A stretch of 63,257 bases of DNA, filler included, from Reticulomyxa filosa (Eukaryota > Protista > Foraminifera), in the NCBI GenBank assembly GCA_000512085.1. It is 14 parts of 14 records of this genome, joined end to end, with 100 filler letters (N's around TTAATTAATTAA, not from the genome) between each part and the next. Parts side by side here need not be neighbours in the genome. Positions count along the whole stretch, not along the records: positions 1 to 12,161 come from ASPP01018165.1; 13 more parts are not named here. One strand, 5' to 3'. A program made the translations under genes and the position numbers. The notes under the pieces were generated by a model. It was not told the DNA's origin, made no database searches, and saw nothing but the letters and a program-made list of their open reading frames with translations. Positions 1 through 12,161 of the stretch are shown in pieces (positions within the stretch are counted from its first letter, which is position 1; every line of letters begins with the position of its first letter).

Positions 1-72
1 TTTTTTTAATGAAAGATATAAATAGTTTTTTTTTTATTTAAAAAAAAAAAAAAAGGGGGGTCAACCCATTAC

Positions 73-830
73 CTCATTATTTTTATAGCTGAATGCGCGC
101 TGCCAATTAACTGCAGAGGCATACTTTTCCAATACATCCACAAACAATACTTGCTTGTTTTGCTCTGCACATCGACATGCATATATACAAATTTCGTCCT
201 ATATTATATATGTGCATATACACACATACATGGCTGACGACCTGTTGTTCATCTCTTTCATTTGGAAACAAAGAGGAAATGGACAGTCTTCAAACTGATT
301 TTATGTCATTGTCCACGATCTCCTTGATTTTTTCGAGATATTTCACGTGGAGAGTGTCCGCCTATGTGCACACATATTTTTCAATGCAGTTACACGCAAG
401 CGTACACAATTTTTTTTTTGGATATGGTCATATCGCAGTAATTGATCCAATAAATACTTATACCAAATCAGATTTTTCGTCTTTCGACTCGCTCATGATC
501 TTTCTTCAGTTTCTTGGTCTATTTAGCTTTCCCCAAGCCTTTCAAAAAAAAAAGAACGAAAAAAAGGTACAACGTAGTTGTACATGTTTTTGCAATAATG
601 TAATAATTTATTTTTAAACACTGCTATCTTGTTTCCAAAAAAATTACAAACATTTGAGATTTTCCATGAGACCAGCAATCAGTAGTGCAGGTATCAGTTA
701 TTTGCTTTAAATAATCACACATTCTCACTTTAATAGATACAGTCTTTTCGTAGGACTTGACCTTCAACGTACGTACTTTTAAATTCATTGGGCGTATTTT
801 TGCAAATTGCAAAAAGAAACCGATATGATC
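73..830 (-). pseudogene. Spliced gene relic of unknown family with in-frame stops
   Basis: Minus-strand exon-like blocks with AG/GT edges (ADTLHVKYLEKIKEIVDNDIKSV*RLSISSLFPNERDEQQ; AEQNKQVLFVDVLEKYASAVNWQRAFSYKNNE). TGA at 290-292; TGA/TAA/TGA in one frame at 506-508, 458-460 and 428-430. Confidence 0.45.
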
Positions 831-951
831 TAAATAAAGAATGTTCTTTTGTGTTTGAGGAAGGGAAATGAAAAGAAGTGGACGGTTCCCTCAGTATCTC
901 CTCAACATTATTTTCTTATAGTGGAAGATTTCTTACAAATCCTTTTGCACG

Positions 952-2747
952 ATGCTGATGTGTAACAAGAATGGCTGTTATTCTGAAAATGGATATGTTG
1001 CAGAATCAGCCACTCTGACAGAGGAGTCGGACGACGAGATGATATTGAACAAGTGGAGCTTTTCAATGTCGATTTCGGCAAAGAGTATTTTACCAGGGTC
1101 ACAAAGTATGCACAATGACGGTACACAGCATAAAGAGGGAGTATATGCGGACACTGAAACATTGTCGAGTTTCGTACATTCCGCGTCAGGAAGTCCACAC
1201 GGAAATGAACACAGCAACATTTGTGGGACGCAATCTCTCAGTACCGTCACCGAAGCAAAGCTCTCTACAGAAAGCGCAAGCAAAGGCAAGTTTTTGTGTT
1301 TTCCTTTTGCAATAAATACGTACTTGTCACATTTCCATTTCTTTTTTTTTTTTTTTAAAACAAAACAAAACAAAACAAAATGGAAAGGAATTCGTCCAAA
1401 AAAATACAAGATCGTCAAACAGTTGATGACAGGATCGTCATCAACGGTATACGTCGTGCAATCGGATGAACCAGAAAATAGCAACCAGTTTTATGCCATG
1501 AAAATCATCCCGGTTATAATTATGTTTATACGTATGTTTATTTTTCCATTAACATTCAAAAAAAAAAAAAAGTGAGAAAAAAAAAATTTGTATGCACGCA
1601 TAATTATAAAAAAGTTTACAAGTGAGCTGAACGAACCATTGTTTTGGAATGAATGTGGTCATTTGTCCAAGTTGAAAGACGTCCCCGGAGTAATACAGTA
1701 AGTGTTTGGCAACAAAAAATTGAAAAAAGTCAGGAACAAGGGGAGGGGGGGAGGGGGGAAAAAAGAAAGGGGAGAGGGTATGTGAGTGCAAGAGAAAAAG
1801 TGTGTATGCTTTGCATATTTTAAAAAAAAATTTTTTTTGAATTAAAAAAAAAAAAAAAAAAATGGAAAATTATTTTTATCACGGTAATCGTGGGCTTATT
1901 GTAACGGAATTAGCATCTTATGATTTATTCAGTTACGTTTGTGCTCATTATTTTTTTGAAGAAGCACAACAACAGCAACAAAAAAAAAAACAAATCAAAA
2001 GGCGTAGAAGCGAATACTCGGAATGCTCGATGGATTATCCGATCATTGTTAAATACGGTGAAACACTTGCATGAAAGAAACATCGCACATCGAGATATCA
2101 AGCCAGAGAACGTGGTGATATTCGAACGAGAACACTTAGCACTGCAAGCGAAAGCGCTACAAGGACAGCAAGAGCAGATGAAAGAAAAGAATGAGGAACA
2201 AAAAAGTTGGAAAGCTGAGAAAGAACGACAAAAACCAAGAGGGAAGCGTATAGAAGTCAAGCTAATTGACTTCGGCAATGCGGTGAGTGGAGACAATTGG
2301 CACAAGTCAAATGAAATGGTTGGAACTTTGAATTACATGTCACCAGAAAGGTACAATCCAGCACAGCAACAGCTATGGCATGAATGGAGTGGTGACATGT
2401 GGAGTATTGGCGTGGTCACCTTTGAGCTGTTATTTCAACAGCGGTTGTTTGAATTAGATCAAGAAGTCCATGCCCTTAAAGCACAAATCTGTCAAGGACT
2501 TTGGTCGTTTCCTACCACAAACCAATCTCAACTTTCCATGTCTGATTTAGAATGGTTAGCCGCAAAGCATTTTATCAATCATTTGCTTGTCATTGATCCC
2601 AAGCAAAGAACCACTGCTGCCTATGCACTTAAACATCCTTGGCTATGTCGCAGCAACAAAACCAACTCCATTAAGCAGTTGAGACATAGAATGCATCTGT
2701 GGGAAAAACGTATCACCACTTATGCTCCGTCATCAAAAAAGTATTGA
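952..2747 (+). CDS. Ser/Thr protein kinase, CAMK-like, multi-exon
   Basis: Kinase motifs in order: YKIVKQLMTGSSSTVY, YAMK, LFWNE, IVTELASYDLF, HRDIKPEN, LIDFGNA, VGTLNYMSPE, DMWSIGV, DPKQRTTAAYALKHPW. Introns at ~1286-1387 (GC donor), 1513-1614 and ~1697-1860. A 1-nt frameshift lies in the A11 run at 1980-1990. Confidence 0.9.
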
Positions 2748-4144
2748 AACAACCCCTTTTTTTTTCCTCTCTTTTCCTTTTACGTAACTATATGAAAAAA
2801 AACTCGCCGATTGTTGGACTGAGAAAAACGAAAAAATGTGGAAAAACTTTCTTTTTTTTTTTTTGTGTTCTTTTTTCTGACTTTTTTTTTCTCCTGTGTC
2901 AGTCAAGTAATTTATTTCTTCTCTTTCTTCAAAAAAAAAAAAAGGTGTAATTTGTGCAACCATTTTTTTTTTAATCTGTACATTTTGCAGATGGTTTTTT
3001 TTTCGTCGTTATTGCTTTTCATCTGCCGTCCTTGCTTTTTTTGGTTTTGTTTTTTTCTTCTTTTTTTAATTTGATTGGTTGTTCGTGTAATGGAATGACA
3101 AGGGTTTGTAAAGTATTAAAATTGTCCCTGCAAGGAAAGCAATGAAAGAGGAAGGGAAAAAACAGACACGAGAAAACAGTGAGGTACAAATGATTTGTGT
3201 CATTTAAATTTGTAAAATTGTTTGAATCGACGTTTTTTTTCTATTATTTTGATTTGTTTTGGTTTTTGTTTTTGTTCCCTCTCTCCTCTTCCTCTTTTTC
3301 GTTTTGTTCGCTTTTTTTTTCCCTGATTTGTCGAACAAAAAGCTCCCTCTTTTGTTTTTCCTCCTGTTTTTTTCTGTTTGTTTGTTCGGTTTTTTCCTCT
3401 GCAGCAACAGTAATTCAAAGAAATTGTAGTGTTCTGACTTTTTTTGGTGTTTGTTTTTATATTTGGTGTTTGATGCTCTTGGACAAGTTCTGTCGATTTC
3501 AATATTTCATACACTTTATCAACTTTTTTTATGCCGGTTTTGGTATCGATAAATGTTGTCAAATTTGTGTCAAAGCTTTTTAATTTGAAGTTGGTTTACA
3601 AAACATGTGTCAACATTTCTATCTCTTTTTTCACTTATCATTAATCACAACTTGTTTTTCTGAATCAATTTTGACGAATTTTATATCTACAAAAAGCAAA
3701 CTAAATAAATTAACATCTTTAAAATTCAAACAATAGTGAAAACGGAACAAGGACGGTTTCCTTGTGGCTCATTGTTAATATGAAGTTTCCTAGTGAACAA
3801 ACAAAAAAAGCGTTTGTCCGCTGGCCAACACGTAATAATATGCCCACGGGCAAAATAAAACAATACATCGTGCAGCACAAAACAACTAAGTTGGGCGTGT
3901 TTTTTGGTTTTGTGCTCTGGGTTTTTTTCTAACTTCTCATCTGCCTAGAAACTTTAAAGCATTATCACAAAACATTTGTTTCTTTTTGCTAATAATTTCA
4001 TACGCTGTGGCTTCAATAGTAGATTTTGCTTGAATAAAGATTGTGTTTAAGCCGAATCAAAATTGCACCTACTAGTGACAAACTAAAATCTCCATTCACA
4101 AGTGGTGCGTTAAGACACCCTTTTGGGGCAAAGAACGCTTGCGA

Positions 4145-7100
4145 ATGTTGCACGACCAAACACGACGAAATGTGGAAGAAACTTTGAAAAAGAGGATTGA
4201 ACAAGGGCTGGCTGCATTTCAATCTGAATTGAAGCCGAACACAAACGTGAACAAGCAACTTTGATTTTTTTTTTTTTTTTTTTTTTGTTCATTCAACGTA
4301 TACCATTTAGTAATCTTACGTAGTTTTATTTAATTTCTTTTTTTTGCTTGTTTCTTATTGTCACTTTTTTAATATTTTTTAAGCTACAAAAAAAAAACGT
4401 TGCTGGACTTATGAACAGATCAATGTGTTTCCATTGAAAGATAAGCCTGAAGAATGGTATGTTGATTTTATTTTATTGTTAGTGATTATTATTGAATTTC
4501 AACTTTATGTAGGTTTCAAAAGAAAAAAAAAAAAAAAATGACCCCAAAAAAGTTTTGTTGTATGTTGTTGTGATTGGTTCGGAACTTGAATGGAAAGGCA
4601 TTTCAACATATGGCCAAAAACTGGAAGTCTTGCAAATGTGTGCATCCATGGGACAATTGAATTTCCCCGTGAATATCCGAAAAGACCACCTACAATCGAA
4701 ATTGCATCACCCATTGCGCAATCTAACATTTTGTCGAACCATCCTTATGTTCTCGATGTCAACCACAAACTAATTGTCAAATTGCCTTTGCTGCAATGTA
4801 TGCAAAAAAAAAAAAAAATCAAAACAACAAAAACAATTGCGTGATCCCGTTAGGAACGTGAATTTGAAATTTCTTGAAAAATTTTTTTTTTTATTCCCTT
4901 TTTTTTCCCTTCACCCCTCTTCTTCTTTCTTCCCATCCTCTTGCTCTCCTTGAGTGCTCTTTCTTCATGAAGGTCAAACAAATGACACGAAGGAAAGAAT
5001 ATCTTTTGCGCAAATGAGGAGCTGGCTTTTTTTTAAAGTTTAGATTACTATAAATAATAACAATTGGTGAAGGATGACTTAAACAAAAAGGGGGAGGAGG
5101 GGGGGGGGGGTAGAAAAATAAAAAAAATGAAAATTAGAGGTGATAAAATAGATATTTGATTGAGTCGAGAAAATAATAAACACAAATACAAACATACATG
5201 AAAAAAAACTCCAACAAACGGATAAATAAATACAAAGCCTCATGGCAAGCCACGACATCTGTGAGCAGCATATTGGCAGATTTGTGTCTGATTTTCGACG
5301 GAATGACAGCAAAAAAAGAAGATATAAACACAGTGAAACAACAAATAAGCCAATATACTTGCATGTGGTGTGGTCATACGAATGACAAACCCATACCGGC
5401 CAAAGGAATATCCTATGGAGCAACCAAAAGTGACTTTACAGAAATGAAGGGACGCGAACCGTTAGACATTGTCAACAACTCTCAAGTATGGGATGATGCC
5501 AAAGTACCTGACATTGGTTAATTTTATTTCTTTCTTTATTTGTGAATGCATGTATTTTGCATCACAAAAAAATAAAAGACATACACGAAATGCGCAATTG
5601 CGTTGCGTATAAGAGAAGGAAAAGAAAAGACTGTAGACAATACCCTCTTTCATCTCCTTTTTTTTTTTTTAAAAAAAAAATCAATTGTGATGTTTTGTTG
5701 TGTTTGTTTGTGTCCAGAATGCAATTATGCGCGAGTTTATTTTGAAACGGAGATAGTACGCATACATGTGGGACTGAACAACTTGACTGGTGCACAAGTG
5801 GGATGGAGCCTGAAAGACTCGTTGGACGACAGCGGAGAGTTTGAATTTGTGGCCCTTGGAAACCGCTACTCAGCAACAGGGGTGGCATCACTTTTGTTGC
5901 ACAAAAAACCTTTCGAATTGGCGTACACTCAAGAACAGAAAATAGGATTTTCTGACGGAGATTTTGTGGTGTCTGCTGCAGACTTTGATAATGGGACATT
6001 TAGCTTTTTCGTCAATGGGAAAGAATGTGTCACTTTTCCCATGCCACCTTCATTCCGAAATGGAACAATCACTCCCTTTGTCGGGCTTGCGGTATGAATG
6101 TTTTCTCCCCCTTCTACTCTTCTCAGACAACCTTCAACCCATTTTCTCTCTGCCTTTTCCAAAAAGCATTCTCCCATTTCCATTTCCATTTCCATTCCAA
6201 TGTTTCAACAACAATAATGGTAAAACACACAATAGCAAGGACATATGCGATTGCACTTTTGTGAGTCAAGATTCCCCATCGATAAGTTGAAAAGCTACTT
6301 GACCATTGAAGAGTACAACTCACAAAACAAGGGACAGTATTTATGGGATACGGGCGAAAGTGTGTTGTGGCAGGAACTATTTCGTTATGGAGTGAGAGAG
6401 AAAGAGACCACACAGTCCACACATCCGGAACAGTACAGAGCGCACAAATTCGTATTACAAATTTTTGAGCACTTGGCTCTTCAAGATTTAGCACAATGCC
6501 GTATGTGTTGTGATTTATATTTTGTGTATTTTTTTTTTTTTTTTTTTCTTTTTAATTTTTATATTTGTATTTGATATATTTACAAATTTTTTTCTCTCAT
6601 TCACCTCTTATCTATCCCTTATCCTCATTGTCCCTTTGTGTTTCTTCTTCTTCTTCTCCTTCTTCTCCATTACAGATTGTGTGTGTGGCATGTGGAACCA
6701 CATTTTGAAACAATCTCAAATATCGCCTTTATCGAAGTTGAAATGCTACTACTCCAACAAAACCTTCAAGGAAACAACCATCGGAATGATGTTGCAACTT
6801 GACTTTAAACAGGTATCCAGTAAAAGCACCGCGAAAAAGGCACTTACCAAATTTCGTGTCTCTCCAGACCGTATCTCAGTGCTTGCATGGACCAAGAATA
6901 TTCAATATGACTCTGCCAAAGAAGAGTTTACTCATATTTTGCCACTCGTCATTAATCCCACACACGCAGAGAGGGCATTTTCGGACATCAAGAAATACAT
7001 CCCTTTACTTTCTCCTGGAGGTCTCTTCACTCCCAAAGGTGCTTTGGATATCATCTGTGAATTGCTTAATGCGTTAAGTCGACTCCAAACAATTTTATTA

Positions 7101-10100
7101 CCAAAGGAGTTTTTTTTTTCCGCATGCCCCCTTCTCTTATGTTTATGTTTACGTTCACGTCGACATTTGAACTGAAATGTGGTCGAAACAAGAAAAATAT
7201 GTCGATAACCAAATATGACAACAATAAAAATGGAAAATAAAATAAAATATGAACATTAGAAACGTGGAATTGCTGAGTAATCAATTTTCAGGGAAAAAGG
7301 TTCCTTCTCGTGAACAAATTACGCATGCATTGTCAGTGTGGTTTAGCCTGCATCATCTGCTGTTGCATTTACGATTTCTCTTTCCCGAAATGGTTGACCA
7401 AGCTGAAGAGTGTATCAACAAGTTTTTGCCAGTAACGAGCGAGCGCGGCCGTGAGGACATACCCCAGCTGGGCAAAGTTGTAATGTACTTGTTGTTAACC
7501 CCTTCTTTCGATTGGCATGCGATTCGCCGACCATTGATAGAAGAGCAATTTTGTCGAGATGTCCCCACGTACATATCCATCCACAGACAATTGGAAGATT
7601 TGGAAACACCAACCAAAGATCGTCTGCGTTTGACCTTTGAGTCTACCGAAAAGTCGCGACGAAAGTTGATGTTGCTATTTGTATTTTTGACACAATTTGG
7701 TTGTTTGGGTGGCATTCAAGTCAAAAATATCTTTGACCATTATAATCGTACGTACGGTGGCTACGTTGGTGTGGCTGCTTTGCGATTGGAGGTCTGATAT
7801 CTTTTTTTCTTTGTATGATTTGTTTTTTGTTTTTTGAGTGTGTTCTTGTTCGTTATGTTTGATGGTTTGTCCCTCTTCCCCTCTTCCCCTCTTCCCCTCT
7901 TCCCCAGGGTGTTTTTTTTTGTTTTTTTTATCTGTGCGTACAAACAAAAAAGAATAAAATTTTCTCGCTGACGTTGGGCACGACACCGATCTCAAAATAG
8001 GAAGCCTGTGGGAACATGATGAAGTGCAAAGATTGGATCGATACTTTCCAATTTCTGTCCATCGAACTCAACGATGACAACATTAACAAATTATTGGTGA
8101 ACGCGCTGCGCGATGCAGATCGAAAGGGATACACGCAGGTCCTTCGAAAGCCACCTCAATCATTTGCGTCCGGTGAAGGAGTACGTTCAGGAGATGCCAA
8201 TGGAACTTCTCCAGGTCGCTCGTTTTCCCCTCGAGATTCGCAGGGAAGAGAAGGTGACAGGGGCTTTGGTGGACGATTACCGCGAGGCCGAACAAGAGGA
8301 GGAGGAGATTTTGGAAGAGAAGGTGGACGCGAAAAAGGTCGCGGCGGATTGAGCACCCGAGGTTCCGGCGAGTACTCGCGAAGAGGAGGAGGGGGTACGG
8401 GTGATGTTCGCTTTGACAAAGGAAGAGAAAATTGGGATAGAGACCGAGATCGCGATAGAGATAGAGATAGAGAAAGAGGAGGAGGTGGATTTGGAAGACG
8501 TGGTAGAGGCCGAGGATTATCTGATTCCGATGGTAGAAACTATCGAGACTCGGACCGAGGAGGAGGTAGAGAAGGTGATATGGGTAGAGGTAGAGAAGGT
8601 GATATGAGTAGAGGTAGAGGAGGCAGAGAAGGTGATATGGGTAGAGGTAGAGGAGGCATGGGCAGGAACCGAGATCGGGAAACGAATTGGGGCAAAGGCC
8701 GAGATAACCGAGAACGCGAGAGAAGACAAGTGTTAGGCGATGTTTCTGAACATGCAGCAATGTCTTACCCTGCGGAAGCCGTGACTAAAAAAGACCAATT
8801 GCCGGTCTTTTTGCAGTCGGGATTGCAACTTCAAGGCATTGACAAGTGGAGAAATGTCCAAGAAAAAGGATTACCGTTGGCGTGTGCAGGAAAAGATTGC
8901 ACTGTGTTGTCACCAGCTGGAAGTGGTAAATCCACTTTGGTCTCCATTGCTGCTTTGTATCGGCTGTACGTTAAAAAGGATCCCTCTCACGTCATTATCA
9001 TAGGCGGAGACAACTTCCACTGCAGCCATATGGCTAAGTTCATCGAGCGAATGGGGGAAAAAGTCCCTGATTTATCCGTTAGGTTTTTGGACGAAAGAAA
9101 AACCGATATGAGTAGAACTGATTATTCGCGAGGTCGAAATATTTACATTGGTTACGTAAAATGTTTTGTTTTGTTTTGTCTTTATTTCAATGAATCTTTG
9201 TTTTTTGTATATACACATATTACAAATATGCATATGTTATGGGTAGAGGGCGTCTATCTTTTCAGTCAGTTAAACAAAATTGCTCTCTCATTTGATAGGA
9301 AAACCACGCGTTATAAGCCTTCTCCTTGATGCAGGTAGAAAGAATATCACCGAGAATTTAACTGCGGTGTATTTAGTAGACGGTGACACATTGTTGAGCG
9401 AGTACCGAGAAGATGTGGAGAGGACCTTCCGATATATACCACAGGGTATTCCATGCGGGTTGTTTTCTAATTCCTGGTGCGAGCCTGTGCAAACCTTTTC
9501 CAAAGTAATACTTACGGAAACGGCATTAGTTGACTTGCGATCTGAACAAAAATTTTGTCACTGGTTTTCTGCTGTGCAAGATGAAAATGAAAGGGATTCC
9601 GTACTTTCTATGCTCTGCAAATTGAACCCGCATAAATCAGGTTTAATCTGGTGCAATGATTCGAAAGAGGTATGCATGAGGAGTTACATTCTTAAGTGCA
9701 CGTGTTCATTTGTTTAAAAAAAAAAAGGCACACTGGGTACATGACCTCTTGCGCTCCAGTGTTACTGTCGTTTTGCTGGATGAGCGACCAATTTTCCAAG
9801 AAGCAAACCGTTTGATTGAAAGTTTCGTTGCTGGAAAACTCCAATATATCATTTGCAATGAAAAATCTCCAGTTAATTGTGTGTTTTTGTTTATTTCCAT
9901 TGTTGAAGCAATAAACCGAATTTTTTTTTTTATAGTCGTTTGAATTATGGAAAACGCAAGCGCATGTAATTATTAACTACAACATATCCAACGCGGAACA
10001 ATATGCGAAACACATGGCTTGCACCGGAGTAACAACTGCACCAGTTCATGTATTGTCGTTTGTAGTGCGAAATAAGGCGCACATGTTTGGAGGGATCGAG

Positions 10101-10169
10101 AAAGGCTGTCAAATTGAATTGAAAGAAGTATCCAAGGATGTACAAGATGGGTTCAAACAGAAAAGCTAA
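4145..10169 (+). CDS. Multidomain protein: Cys-less UBC/E2-like + SPRY + F-box + E2-associated helical domain + RGG/RD region + degenerate eIF4A-like DEAD-box helicase
   Basis: Exons: 4145-4246, ~4384-4456, 4598-4797, 5238-5516, 5718-6091, 6236-6500, 6676-7072, 7260-7791, 8001-9150, 9299-9669, 9728-9871, 9936-10169. All junctions are GT-AG and phase-compatible except the first (A10 run). Motifs: WHFNIWP..IHGTIEFPREYPKRPPTI; VYFETEI..AQVGW..GDFVVSAADFDNGTFSFFVNG; LQIFEHLALQDLAQCHCVCGMWN; GIDKWRNVQ..SPAGSGKS. Confidence 0.8.
8565..8657 (+). repeat. Coding tandem repeat (GREGDMGR-like x3) within RGG/RD low-complexity region
   Basis: Unit ggtagagaaggtgatatg(g/a)gtaga occurs three times. An (RD)n dipeptide run lies at ~8436-8472. 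Confidence 0.85.
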
Positions 10170-11714: not shown

Positions 11715-12161
11715 TTAATAACGGTCATAATACCCTCCATATCCAAAAGCAGAATGGTATTGATGTTGTTGAGGGACACTACCATCGTAATGATCATAGG
11801 CAGGATAATTGGCATAGATTGCGGTAGGATGCTGTGAAACGTTGAGACCGCTATTTGTAGTAGGATTTATATTAATGTTGACATTGGCATTGAGATTAGG
11901 ATTGACGTTATTATTACCATTATTGTTATTACTATTGCTGTTATTAGTATTATTGTTAGTGTTGATATTGTTATTGTTATTGGCATTGATATTAGTATTT
12001 GTATGAGCATTGGAATAGACGGTGGAAGGAGGTACAGAATGAGAGAAATTGGTTGAAGGAAAGCTCTTGTCTTTTAAATTGGAGTAAGTGTTTGGCATGT
12101 GTCTCGAGTGATGGGAATGAGACAACGATTGCTGCTGCTGTTGTTGTTGTTGCGAATGGAG
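11715..12161 (-). CDS. 3' end of a Gln/His/Asn-rich low-complexity protein, truncated by the contig edge
   Basis: Open frame from the gap with poly-Gln then poly-Asn, ending YGGYYDRY*. Confidence 0.5.
   Translation of the reverse strand, partial: LHSQQQQQQQQSLSHSHHSRHMPNTYSNLKDKSFPSTNFSHSVPPSTVYSNAHTNTNINANNNNNINTNNNTNNSNSNNNNGNNNVNPNLNANVNININPTTNSGLNVSQHPTAIYANYPAYDHYDGSVPQQHQYHSAFGYGGYYDRY

Follow-up and report, generated by a model that had tools for sequence, protein, structure and literature searches.

A foraminiferan protein that combines a pseudo-E2, a SPRY domain, an F-box, a UBR4-like U-box/UZI module and a pseudo-DEAD-box core

FBXO45/Fsn-1, which has an F-box and a SPRY domain, and FBH1, which has an F-box and a helicase, act as receptors of Skp1-Cul1-F-box (SCF) ubiquitin ligases, and in DDX1 a SPRY domain is inserted within RecA1 of an active helicase. 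The hemiRING-UZI of the ubiquitin ligase (E3) UBR4 is a module that binds ubiquitin-conjugating enzymes (E2s); its UZI loop activates the ubiquitin-charged E2 (E2~Ub), and the fold of UZI was described as new, its structural relatives and best matches among predicted structures being UBR1-3 (PMC10873205). In ZNFX1, an RNA helicase is joined to a cryptic cross-brace E3 (10.1101/2025.09.05.674436). Here we describe a gene of the foraminiferan Reticulomyxa filosa (assembly GCA_000512085.1), located at positions 4145-10169 of a 63,257-nucleotide stretch of DNA (the window), that encodes in one chain a dead E2, a CxxCGH knuckle, a SPRY domain, an F-box, a U-box-like/UZI module, an RGG region and a dead DEAD-box core. 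All of the modules have known folds, and fusions of an F-box with SPRY, of an F-box with a helicase and of a helicase with an E3 exist separately. An earlier note on this DNA had considered the architecture uncatalogued, and a literature search that covered few subscription papers agreed, finding no description of this fused architecture or of that of its parent family (see below), nor of UZI in an E2-F-box protein.

The window protein differs from each of these systems. FBXO45/Fsn-1 and FBH1 have no E2 or UZI module, and FBH1 is an active UvrD-type DNA helicase, unlike the pseudo-DEAD core found here; the F-box of FBH1-SCF was among the structural matches of the window-family F-box. DDX1 also carries SPRY and DEAD-box folds in one chain and gave the nearest Atlas feature matches (0.81) and the best SPRY structural match, but the window SPRY lies ~650 amino acids (aa) upstream of the helicase, is also found in the helicase-free proteins P0181 and P0070, and accompanies a core that is nearer to DDX6/eIF4A. 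Membership of DDX1 was rejected, as the SPRY domain (aa 187-338) is outside RecA1 (aa 981-1186). ZNFX1 likewise links an RNA helicase to an E3, but its helicase is different, its E3 activity has been demonstrated and it has no F-box/E2 fusion; we note a likeness and claim no homology. The UBR4 hemiRING-UZI (8BTL/8B5W) and the RING and cap helical domain of Ubr1 (7MEY) share with the window family a cross-brace-like part, a long beta insert and a bundle of 11-12 helices. The window family is, however, only 10% identical to them, has too few zinc ligands, has E2, SPRY and F-box domains upstream in the same chain, and lacks both a UBR box and a PF13764 sequence match, so that it does not qualify as a UBR N-recognin.

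Rebuilt from sequence, the R. filosa gene consists of 12 exons separated by 11 GT-AG introns of 58-440 nucleotides (nt). The spliced frame of 4086 nt encodes 1361 aa and contains a single, terminal stop codon. The earlier note had joined open reading frame (ORF) fragments into one protein with 10 of 11 junctions in phase. That count was reproduced with an acceptor at 4384, which yields 1373 aa and an out-of-phase junction, but it does not hold for the acceptor at 4419, which is in phase with the donor at 4247, brings all 11 junctions into phase and eliminates a 12-residue insertion relative to transcript orthologues. A homopolymer error at the 10-A run at 4388-4397 was considered as the cause of the misfit at junction 1 and rejected, because acceptor 4419 fits the sequence unchanged. 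The G+C fraction is 0.443 in exons and 0.301 in introns. Single exons of the gene, or its orthologues, served as queries in the database searches. Searched exon by exon, the window gene gave Pfam matches to UQ_con (E value 3e-4), SPRY (8e-5), F-box-like (0.19) and DEAD (5e-5). Its parts are as follows.

4145-10169, + strand: whole gene, 12 exons, 1361 aa
4145-4246, 4419-4456, 4598-4797, 5238-5516, 5718-6091, 6236-6500, + strand: exons 1-6
6676-7072, 7260-7791, 8001-9150, 9299-9669, 9728-9871, 9936-10169, + strand: exons 7-12
4419-4456, + strand: exon 2, 38 nt; its acceptor brings junction 1 into phase and is also found in the paralogue L014
4172-5299, + strand: pseudo-E2 (UBC fold), aa 10-134, exons 1-4; Pfam UQ_con; an orthologue model matches E2 structures with Z ~15
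5321-5404, + strand: CxxCGH knuckle 3' of the E2; CMWCGH in the window, Thr for the second Cys in orthologues
5456-6256, + strand: SPRY domain, aa 187-338; Pfam SPRY 8e-5; Z 17.8 with DDX1 SPRY and 17.3 with ASH2L SPRY
6440-6725, + strand: F-box, aa 400-436, interrupted by intron 6; leading Leu-Pro absent
6732-7004, + strand: U-box/RING-like subdomain, probably zinc-free, with a long beta-hairpin insert, aa 439-529; one conserved Cys, one His
7017-8135, + strand: UZI/cap-helical-like domain, aa 534-774; structural match to UBR4 8BTL
8172-8723, + strand: RGG/RG/RD low-complexity region, aa 787-970; 7 RGG, 16 RG, 55% R+G
8754-9519, + strand: pseudo-DEAD RecA1, aa 981-1186; Q motif (8850-8867) and Walker A SPAGSGKS (8910-8933) kept
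9547-10166, + strand: pseudo-DEAD RecA2; motifs IV, QxxR and V degenerate, motif VI replaced (10002-10028)

The NCBI model of this locus (RFI_20824/ETO16517.1, on a 12161-bp contig) comprises exons 4-8 only and retains intron pieces; this R. filosa protein, the window's own, was also the strongest match to exon 8. That the annotated model ends at exon 8 is what would be expected if two or more adjacent genes, or a decaying pseudogene, had been stitched together in the earlier note. Such an origin is extremely improbable in view of the 1361 stop-free codons, the intron positions common to paralogues and the orthologues described here. The spliced model is collinear, at 31% identity over residues 10-1366 (local script), with P0154, a single intron-free ORF of 1555 aa on a marine contig of 5549 nt. 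P0154 has the order UQ_con, SPRY, F-box, DEAD and a weak Helicase_C; its UQ_con, DEAD and F-box-like matches exceed the curated Pfam cut-offs, and the E2, SPRY, F-box and DEAD assignments of the earlier note were thus recovered by profile. The same architecture occurs in transcriptome proteins of Elphidium margaritaceum (P0161, 1596 aa) and Nonionella stella (P0162 and P0167, 1349 and 1459 aa), so that the search of foraminiferan transcriptomes proposed earlier returned the domain order as intron-free ORFs in both genera and in marine assemblies. The two Nonionella proteins differ by ~110 aa in the RGG linker, as a result of either alternative splicing or a collapse during assembly. The domain order and exon structure are also shared by two R. 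filosa paralogues, one truncated by a contig end; splice sites projected onto them coincide with AG/GT at 19 of 22 positions in L014 and 14 of 15 in L002. The join noted earlier within a single exon (8001-9150) is also present, exon 9 containing the last part of the helical domain together with the RGG region and motif I of the helicase. Judged from sequence, this is a single gene, as the earlier note had supposed, and one that is real and conserved among foraminifera. The paralogous loci are annotated as several split or partial genes (L014 ~4280-9350 and L002 ~10-4260; RFI_00561, RFI_27062 and neighbours), and RFI_19386 (P0003) is a further R. filosa fragment of the family.

The E2 of the window protein has the UBC fold, but its catalytic Cys is replaced by Lys (within 4773-4793) and the HPN motif is lost. 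Among 36 helicase-fused rows, which include near-copies, none has the catalytic Cys, compared with 57 of 60 other rows; the residues found at this site are H, G, N, V, K, E and S. The dead E2 proposed earlier is therefore a feature of all fused rows. A catalytic role for the Lys was rejected, since orthologues carry H, N, G, V, E or S there. HPN is kept in rotaliid orthologues and lost in the window protein and in the sister clade described below. L014 likewise has Lys at the catalytic site, and an intron-containing copy of the foraminiferan clade (L013, SRR32380747 contig, P0004) has Asn; the latter encodes SPRY, F-box and UZI, and its contig stops before any helicase part.

The C-terminal core consists of two RecA domains with a Q motif and Walker A, and is equally near to DDX6 and eIF4A (E 3e-18, full core). 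Q1016, S1033, G1036, G1038, K1039 and D1142 are invariant, and the Q motif and GxGK are kept throughout. In contrast to these retained elements, DEAD is changed to VDGD (9373-9390), SAT to SNS, and the arginines of motif VI (HRxGRxxR) are gone, which bears out the claim of a dead DEAD-box core. As for RNA contacts, motifs Ia, QxxR and V are lost, IV is degenerate and Ib is partly kept. Taken with established DEAD-box biochemistry, these losses exclude RNA-coupled ATP hydrolysis; the motifs also make canonical RNA clamping by this domain unlikely, and nucleotide binding possible. Among the folded parts RecA2 shows the lowest conservation; none of its residues is invariant across clades. The RGG region is confined to the foraminiferan clade and ranges from ~34 to 250 aa, the shortest being in one Nonionella isoform. 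The suggestion in the earlier note that RNA is recognised through two dead enzyme folds has weakened accordingly: the E2 fold is no RNA reader, most helicase RNA-contact motifs are lost, RecA2 has no invariant residues, and the RGG region is absent in the sister clade and very short in that isoform.

For the helical domain, Pfam and NCBIfam hold no model, and a PDB sequence search gave no match for the region except the F-box. Structure work was carried out on AlphaFold models of the Nonionella orthologue. The model of the helical region (predicted local distance difference test (pLDDT) 93, predicted template-modelling score 0.92) matched the UBR4 E3 module in Foldseek with E 1.4e-4 (next unrelated match 0.38). 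VIA returned Z 21.8 with UBR4 8BTL (root-mean-square deviation 4.3, 315 aligned), Z 11.7 with Ubr1 7MEY and 5.4 for the next match. A second model built from a different alignment gave Z 21.7, placing residues 447-780 on UBR4 4833-5183, and also bore out the folds of the E2 and SPRY domains. Low-scoring alignments (Z 3.8-4.0) relate residues 48-127 of the first model to the Prp19 U-box and the RNF4 RING, and the same residues align with the hemiRING of UBR4; the Atlas comparison gave template-modelling (TM) scores of 0.53/0.65 to a PF13764 cluster. The orthologue thus has a cross-brace subdomain followed by a UZI fold. An MA3/MIF4G identity (Atlas 0.91, low recognition) was rejected because the Foldseek and VIA matches to UBR4 contradict it, and casein kinase matches were rejected at E >0.2. 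The C2HC zinc-ligand set of UBR4 is missing; only one Cys and one His, 73 residues apart, are conserved, and the U-box-like subdomain is therefore probably zinc-free. C443, S487, W491, P509 and H516 are invariant in it.

Exon 8 retrieves 251 proteins, which define a parent family with a consensus of an E2 with HPN and Cys, a CxxCGH knuckle, an F-box and then the U-box-like/UZI module; accessory domains are variable (RRM, WD40, vWA, ankyrin). Members come from chytrids (KAJ3186029.1), Ascomycota (with TerD), rotifers and giant viruses; examples are P0006, P0009, P0019, P0023 and P0027 and the BFVD entries A0A2P0VP69, A0A3G4ZRM4 and A0A3G5A9Q2. Parent-family structural matches have TM 0.73-0.80, and among giant-virus E2s those of Tetraselmis virus 1, Terrestrivirus and Hyperionvirus match with TM up to 0.80 (BFVD). 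The earlier note had likened the helical domain to a protist/giant-virus E2 family; that kinship, which extends to fungi, is borne out in outline by the chytrid, rotifer and giant-virus relatives, but the E3 fold had been missed. Mimivirus R795, its named example, was not among the named BFVD structure matches, and no R795 paper turned up in the literature search. Many further, uncharacterised BFVD matches (rows 4-18; Klosneuvirus, Catovirus, Harvfovirus, Faunusvirus and Pandoravirus vWA and RING proteins) cover part of the fold with TM 0.3-0.6 and have no E2 label; there is possibly a wider UZI-like family among giant-virus proteins. From their anatomy, parent-family members are probably single-chain E2-E3 enzymes. 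If so, they would form an undescribed class, shared by fungi, protists, rotifers and giant viruses, in which a single polypeptide joins an active E2, an F-box and a UBR4-type ligase module that lacks zinc.

Core order and motifs are alike in the parent and fused proteins, but the parent keeps the catalytic Cys and a SEKAL motif, whereas the fused subfamily is E2-dead and has gained a pseudo-helicase. Fused proteins lack SEKAL (at the start of UZI helix 2) as well as the conserved Trp of the second U-box loop, and both fused clades have substitutions at six positions (window equivalents 572, 578, 655, 690, 768 and 774) whose conservation in the parent family is 83% or higher; the UZI core residues G623, E647 and R651 are among those kept. 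A rough offset puts SEKAL close to the loop that joins UZI helices 1 and 2 in UBR4, and it may be a ubiquitin-contact element. The UBR4-type ligase module of the window protein is probably disabled. Because the helical domain has an E3 fold, the protein may contain a third dead enzyme, or a live E3. The second fused clade, mostly from marine assemblies, comprises proteins of 1190-1225 aa with identical domain order and no RGG region. No spliced leader was recognised in this clade, and a radiolarian source would be a guess. The foraminiferan and marine clades are sisters (Shimodaira-Hasegawa-like approximate likelihood ratio test 99; F-box/helical-region tree, quick method, midpoint root), and one fusion event is therefore the simplest reading. 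Their common ancestor had the E2, CxxCGH, SPRY, F-box and U-box-like/UZI parts and a C-terminal core of the DDX6/eIF4A group. The E2 has lost its Cys, the UZI domain a conserved patch on its surface and the helicase its catalytic motifs; what persists are the folds themselves, the core of the F-box, the Q motif and the P-loop.

Of all modules, the F-box shows the highest invariance. Its core residues I407, F408, L411, L416, C419, V422, C423 and W426 are invariant in 14 sequences from both clades, so that 8 of 37 F-box positions are invariant, against 75 of 1051 in the other folded parts (Fisher p=0.005, an optimistic value, as the F-box boundaries were hand-chosen and the 14 sequences are related). 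Profile scores were 24.6 bits for P0154 and 26.1 for P0011 (cut-off 24.3), the window half-exon alone giving E 0.19; the hydrophobic core with VCxxW is present, and the domain aligns by profile and by structure to Skp1-bound F-boxes. P0181, P0070 and P0118 are relatives with an active E2 and a SPRY or SPRY-like domain but no helicase, which suggests that the gain of SPRY preceded the helicase fusion and the loss of the Cys, or was independent of them.

We tentatively favour, at somewhat less than an even chance, a role as a Skp1-binding SCF adaptor that descended from a single-chain E2-F-box-E3 enzyme and is built of dead E2, E3 and helicase folds. The F-box would dock on Skp1-Cul1-Rbx1, which would provide catalysis, and the dead E2/UZI block would be a rigid spacer or a ubiquitin/protein-binding platform. 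The SPRY and helicase-like domains would bind substrate proteins, most plausibly DDX6/eIF4A-type helicase partners or other messenger ribonucleoprotein (mRNP) proteins; RecA1 may gate this binding by taking up ATP/ADP that it does not hydrolyse, and in foraminifera the RGG region would add RNA or granule association. The SCF-adaptor idea was put forward in the earlier note, and the invariance of the F-box supports it. Several points weigh against it. The leading Leu-Pro of the parent-family F-box is missing from the fused proteins, the invariant F-box residues double as fold-core residues, and the significance of their enrichment is optimistic for the reasons given above. Moreover, the tentative assignment of the lost UZI residues to the E2~Ub-activating surface was made by rough offset to UBR4 numbering, and the intact U-box-like/UZI fold may still recruit a free E2.

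If it does, the protein could be an active stand-alone UBR4-type E3, with a separate E2~Ub recruited by the module. The fused dead E2 would then act like a ubiquitin E2 variant (in acceptor-ubiquitin positioning or chain-type tuning), and SPRY, RGG and pseudo-helicase would select RNP substrates, in analogy to ZNFX1 and other fusions of a helicase to an E3. The intact, high-confidence fold (pLDDT 93; Z 21.8), the five invariant residues of the U-box-like subdomain, the HPN of rotaliid orthologues and the fact that UBR4 functions without a linchpin and with one zinc (PMC10873205) all fit this activity. We consider it unlikely, because surface residues conserved in active-E2 relatives, including SEKAL and the U-box-loop Trp, are gone together with the Cys in both clades, and HPN is lost in the window protein and sister clade. 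Every recognisable catalytic site is degenerate, which would also agree with a non-catalytic mRNP scaffold or decoy whose helicase mimic binds MIF4G/MA3-type partners of DDX6/eIF4A and regulates translation or decay, the ubiquitin-system folds being purely structural; the proximity of the core to DDX6 and eIF4A (E 3e-18) and the foraminiferan RGG region point the same way. However, RecA2 of DDX6/eIF4A-type helicases carries much partner surface, and here RecA2 is the part without invariant residues; such a scaffold would also leave the well-kept F-box unexplained, and we regard it as quite doubtful. Mixed or other roles account for the rest. The SCF-adaptor reading can be taken further, to a parent family that is an undescribed self-contained E2-E3 class and, at the same time, a foraminiferan subfamily that is a derived triple pseudoenzyme whose hydrolysis-dead, nucleotide-binding DDX6/eIF4A mimic gates SCF-dependent ubiquitination of mRNP/translation factors; as a whole, this is improbable.

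Two other features were seen in this part of the window. Upstream, at 952-2747 (+ strand), is a spliced Ser/Thr protein kinase gene (Pkinase E 7.5e-32, last exon) with no sign of linkage, and at 11715-12125 (- strand), near the contig end, is an Asn-rich low-complexity ORF that is probably the 3' part of a cut gene.

These findings correct three mis-split R. filosa gene models and place the UZI fold in a broad family that has no annotation and whose members carry it in cis with an E2 and an F-box. The parent family offers small single-chain systems in which to study E3 catalysis that relies on neither linchpin nor zinc, and it suggests that giant viruses carry a ubiquitin tool. In the foraminiferan form, nature provides an example of up to three enzymes dying in one chain while an adaptor motif is retained; this form also includes a rare dead DEAD-box core with the P-loop preserved. 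For foraminifera, a group of ecological importance that has seen little molecular study, it points to a link, specific to the lineage, between SCF and the partners of RNA helicases.

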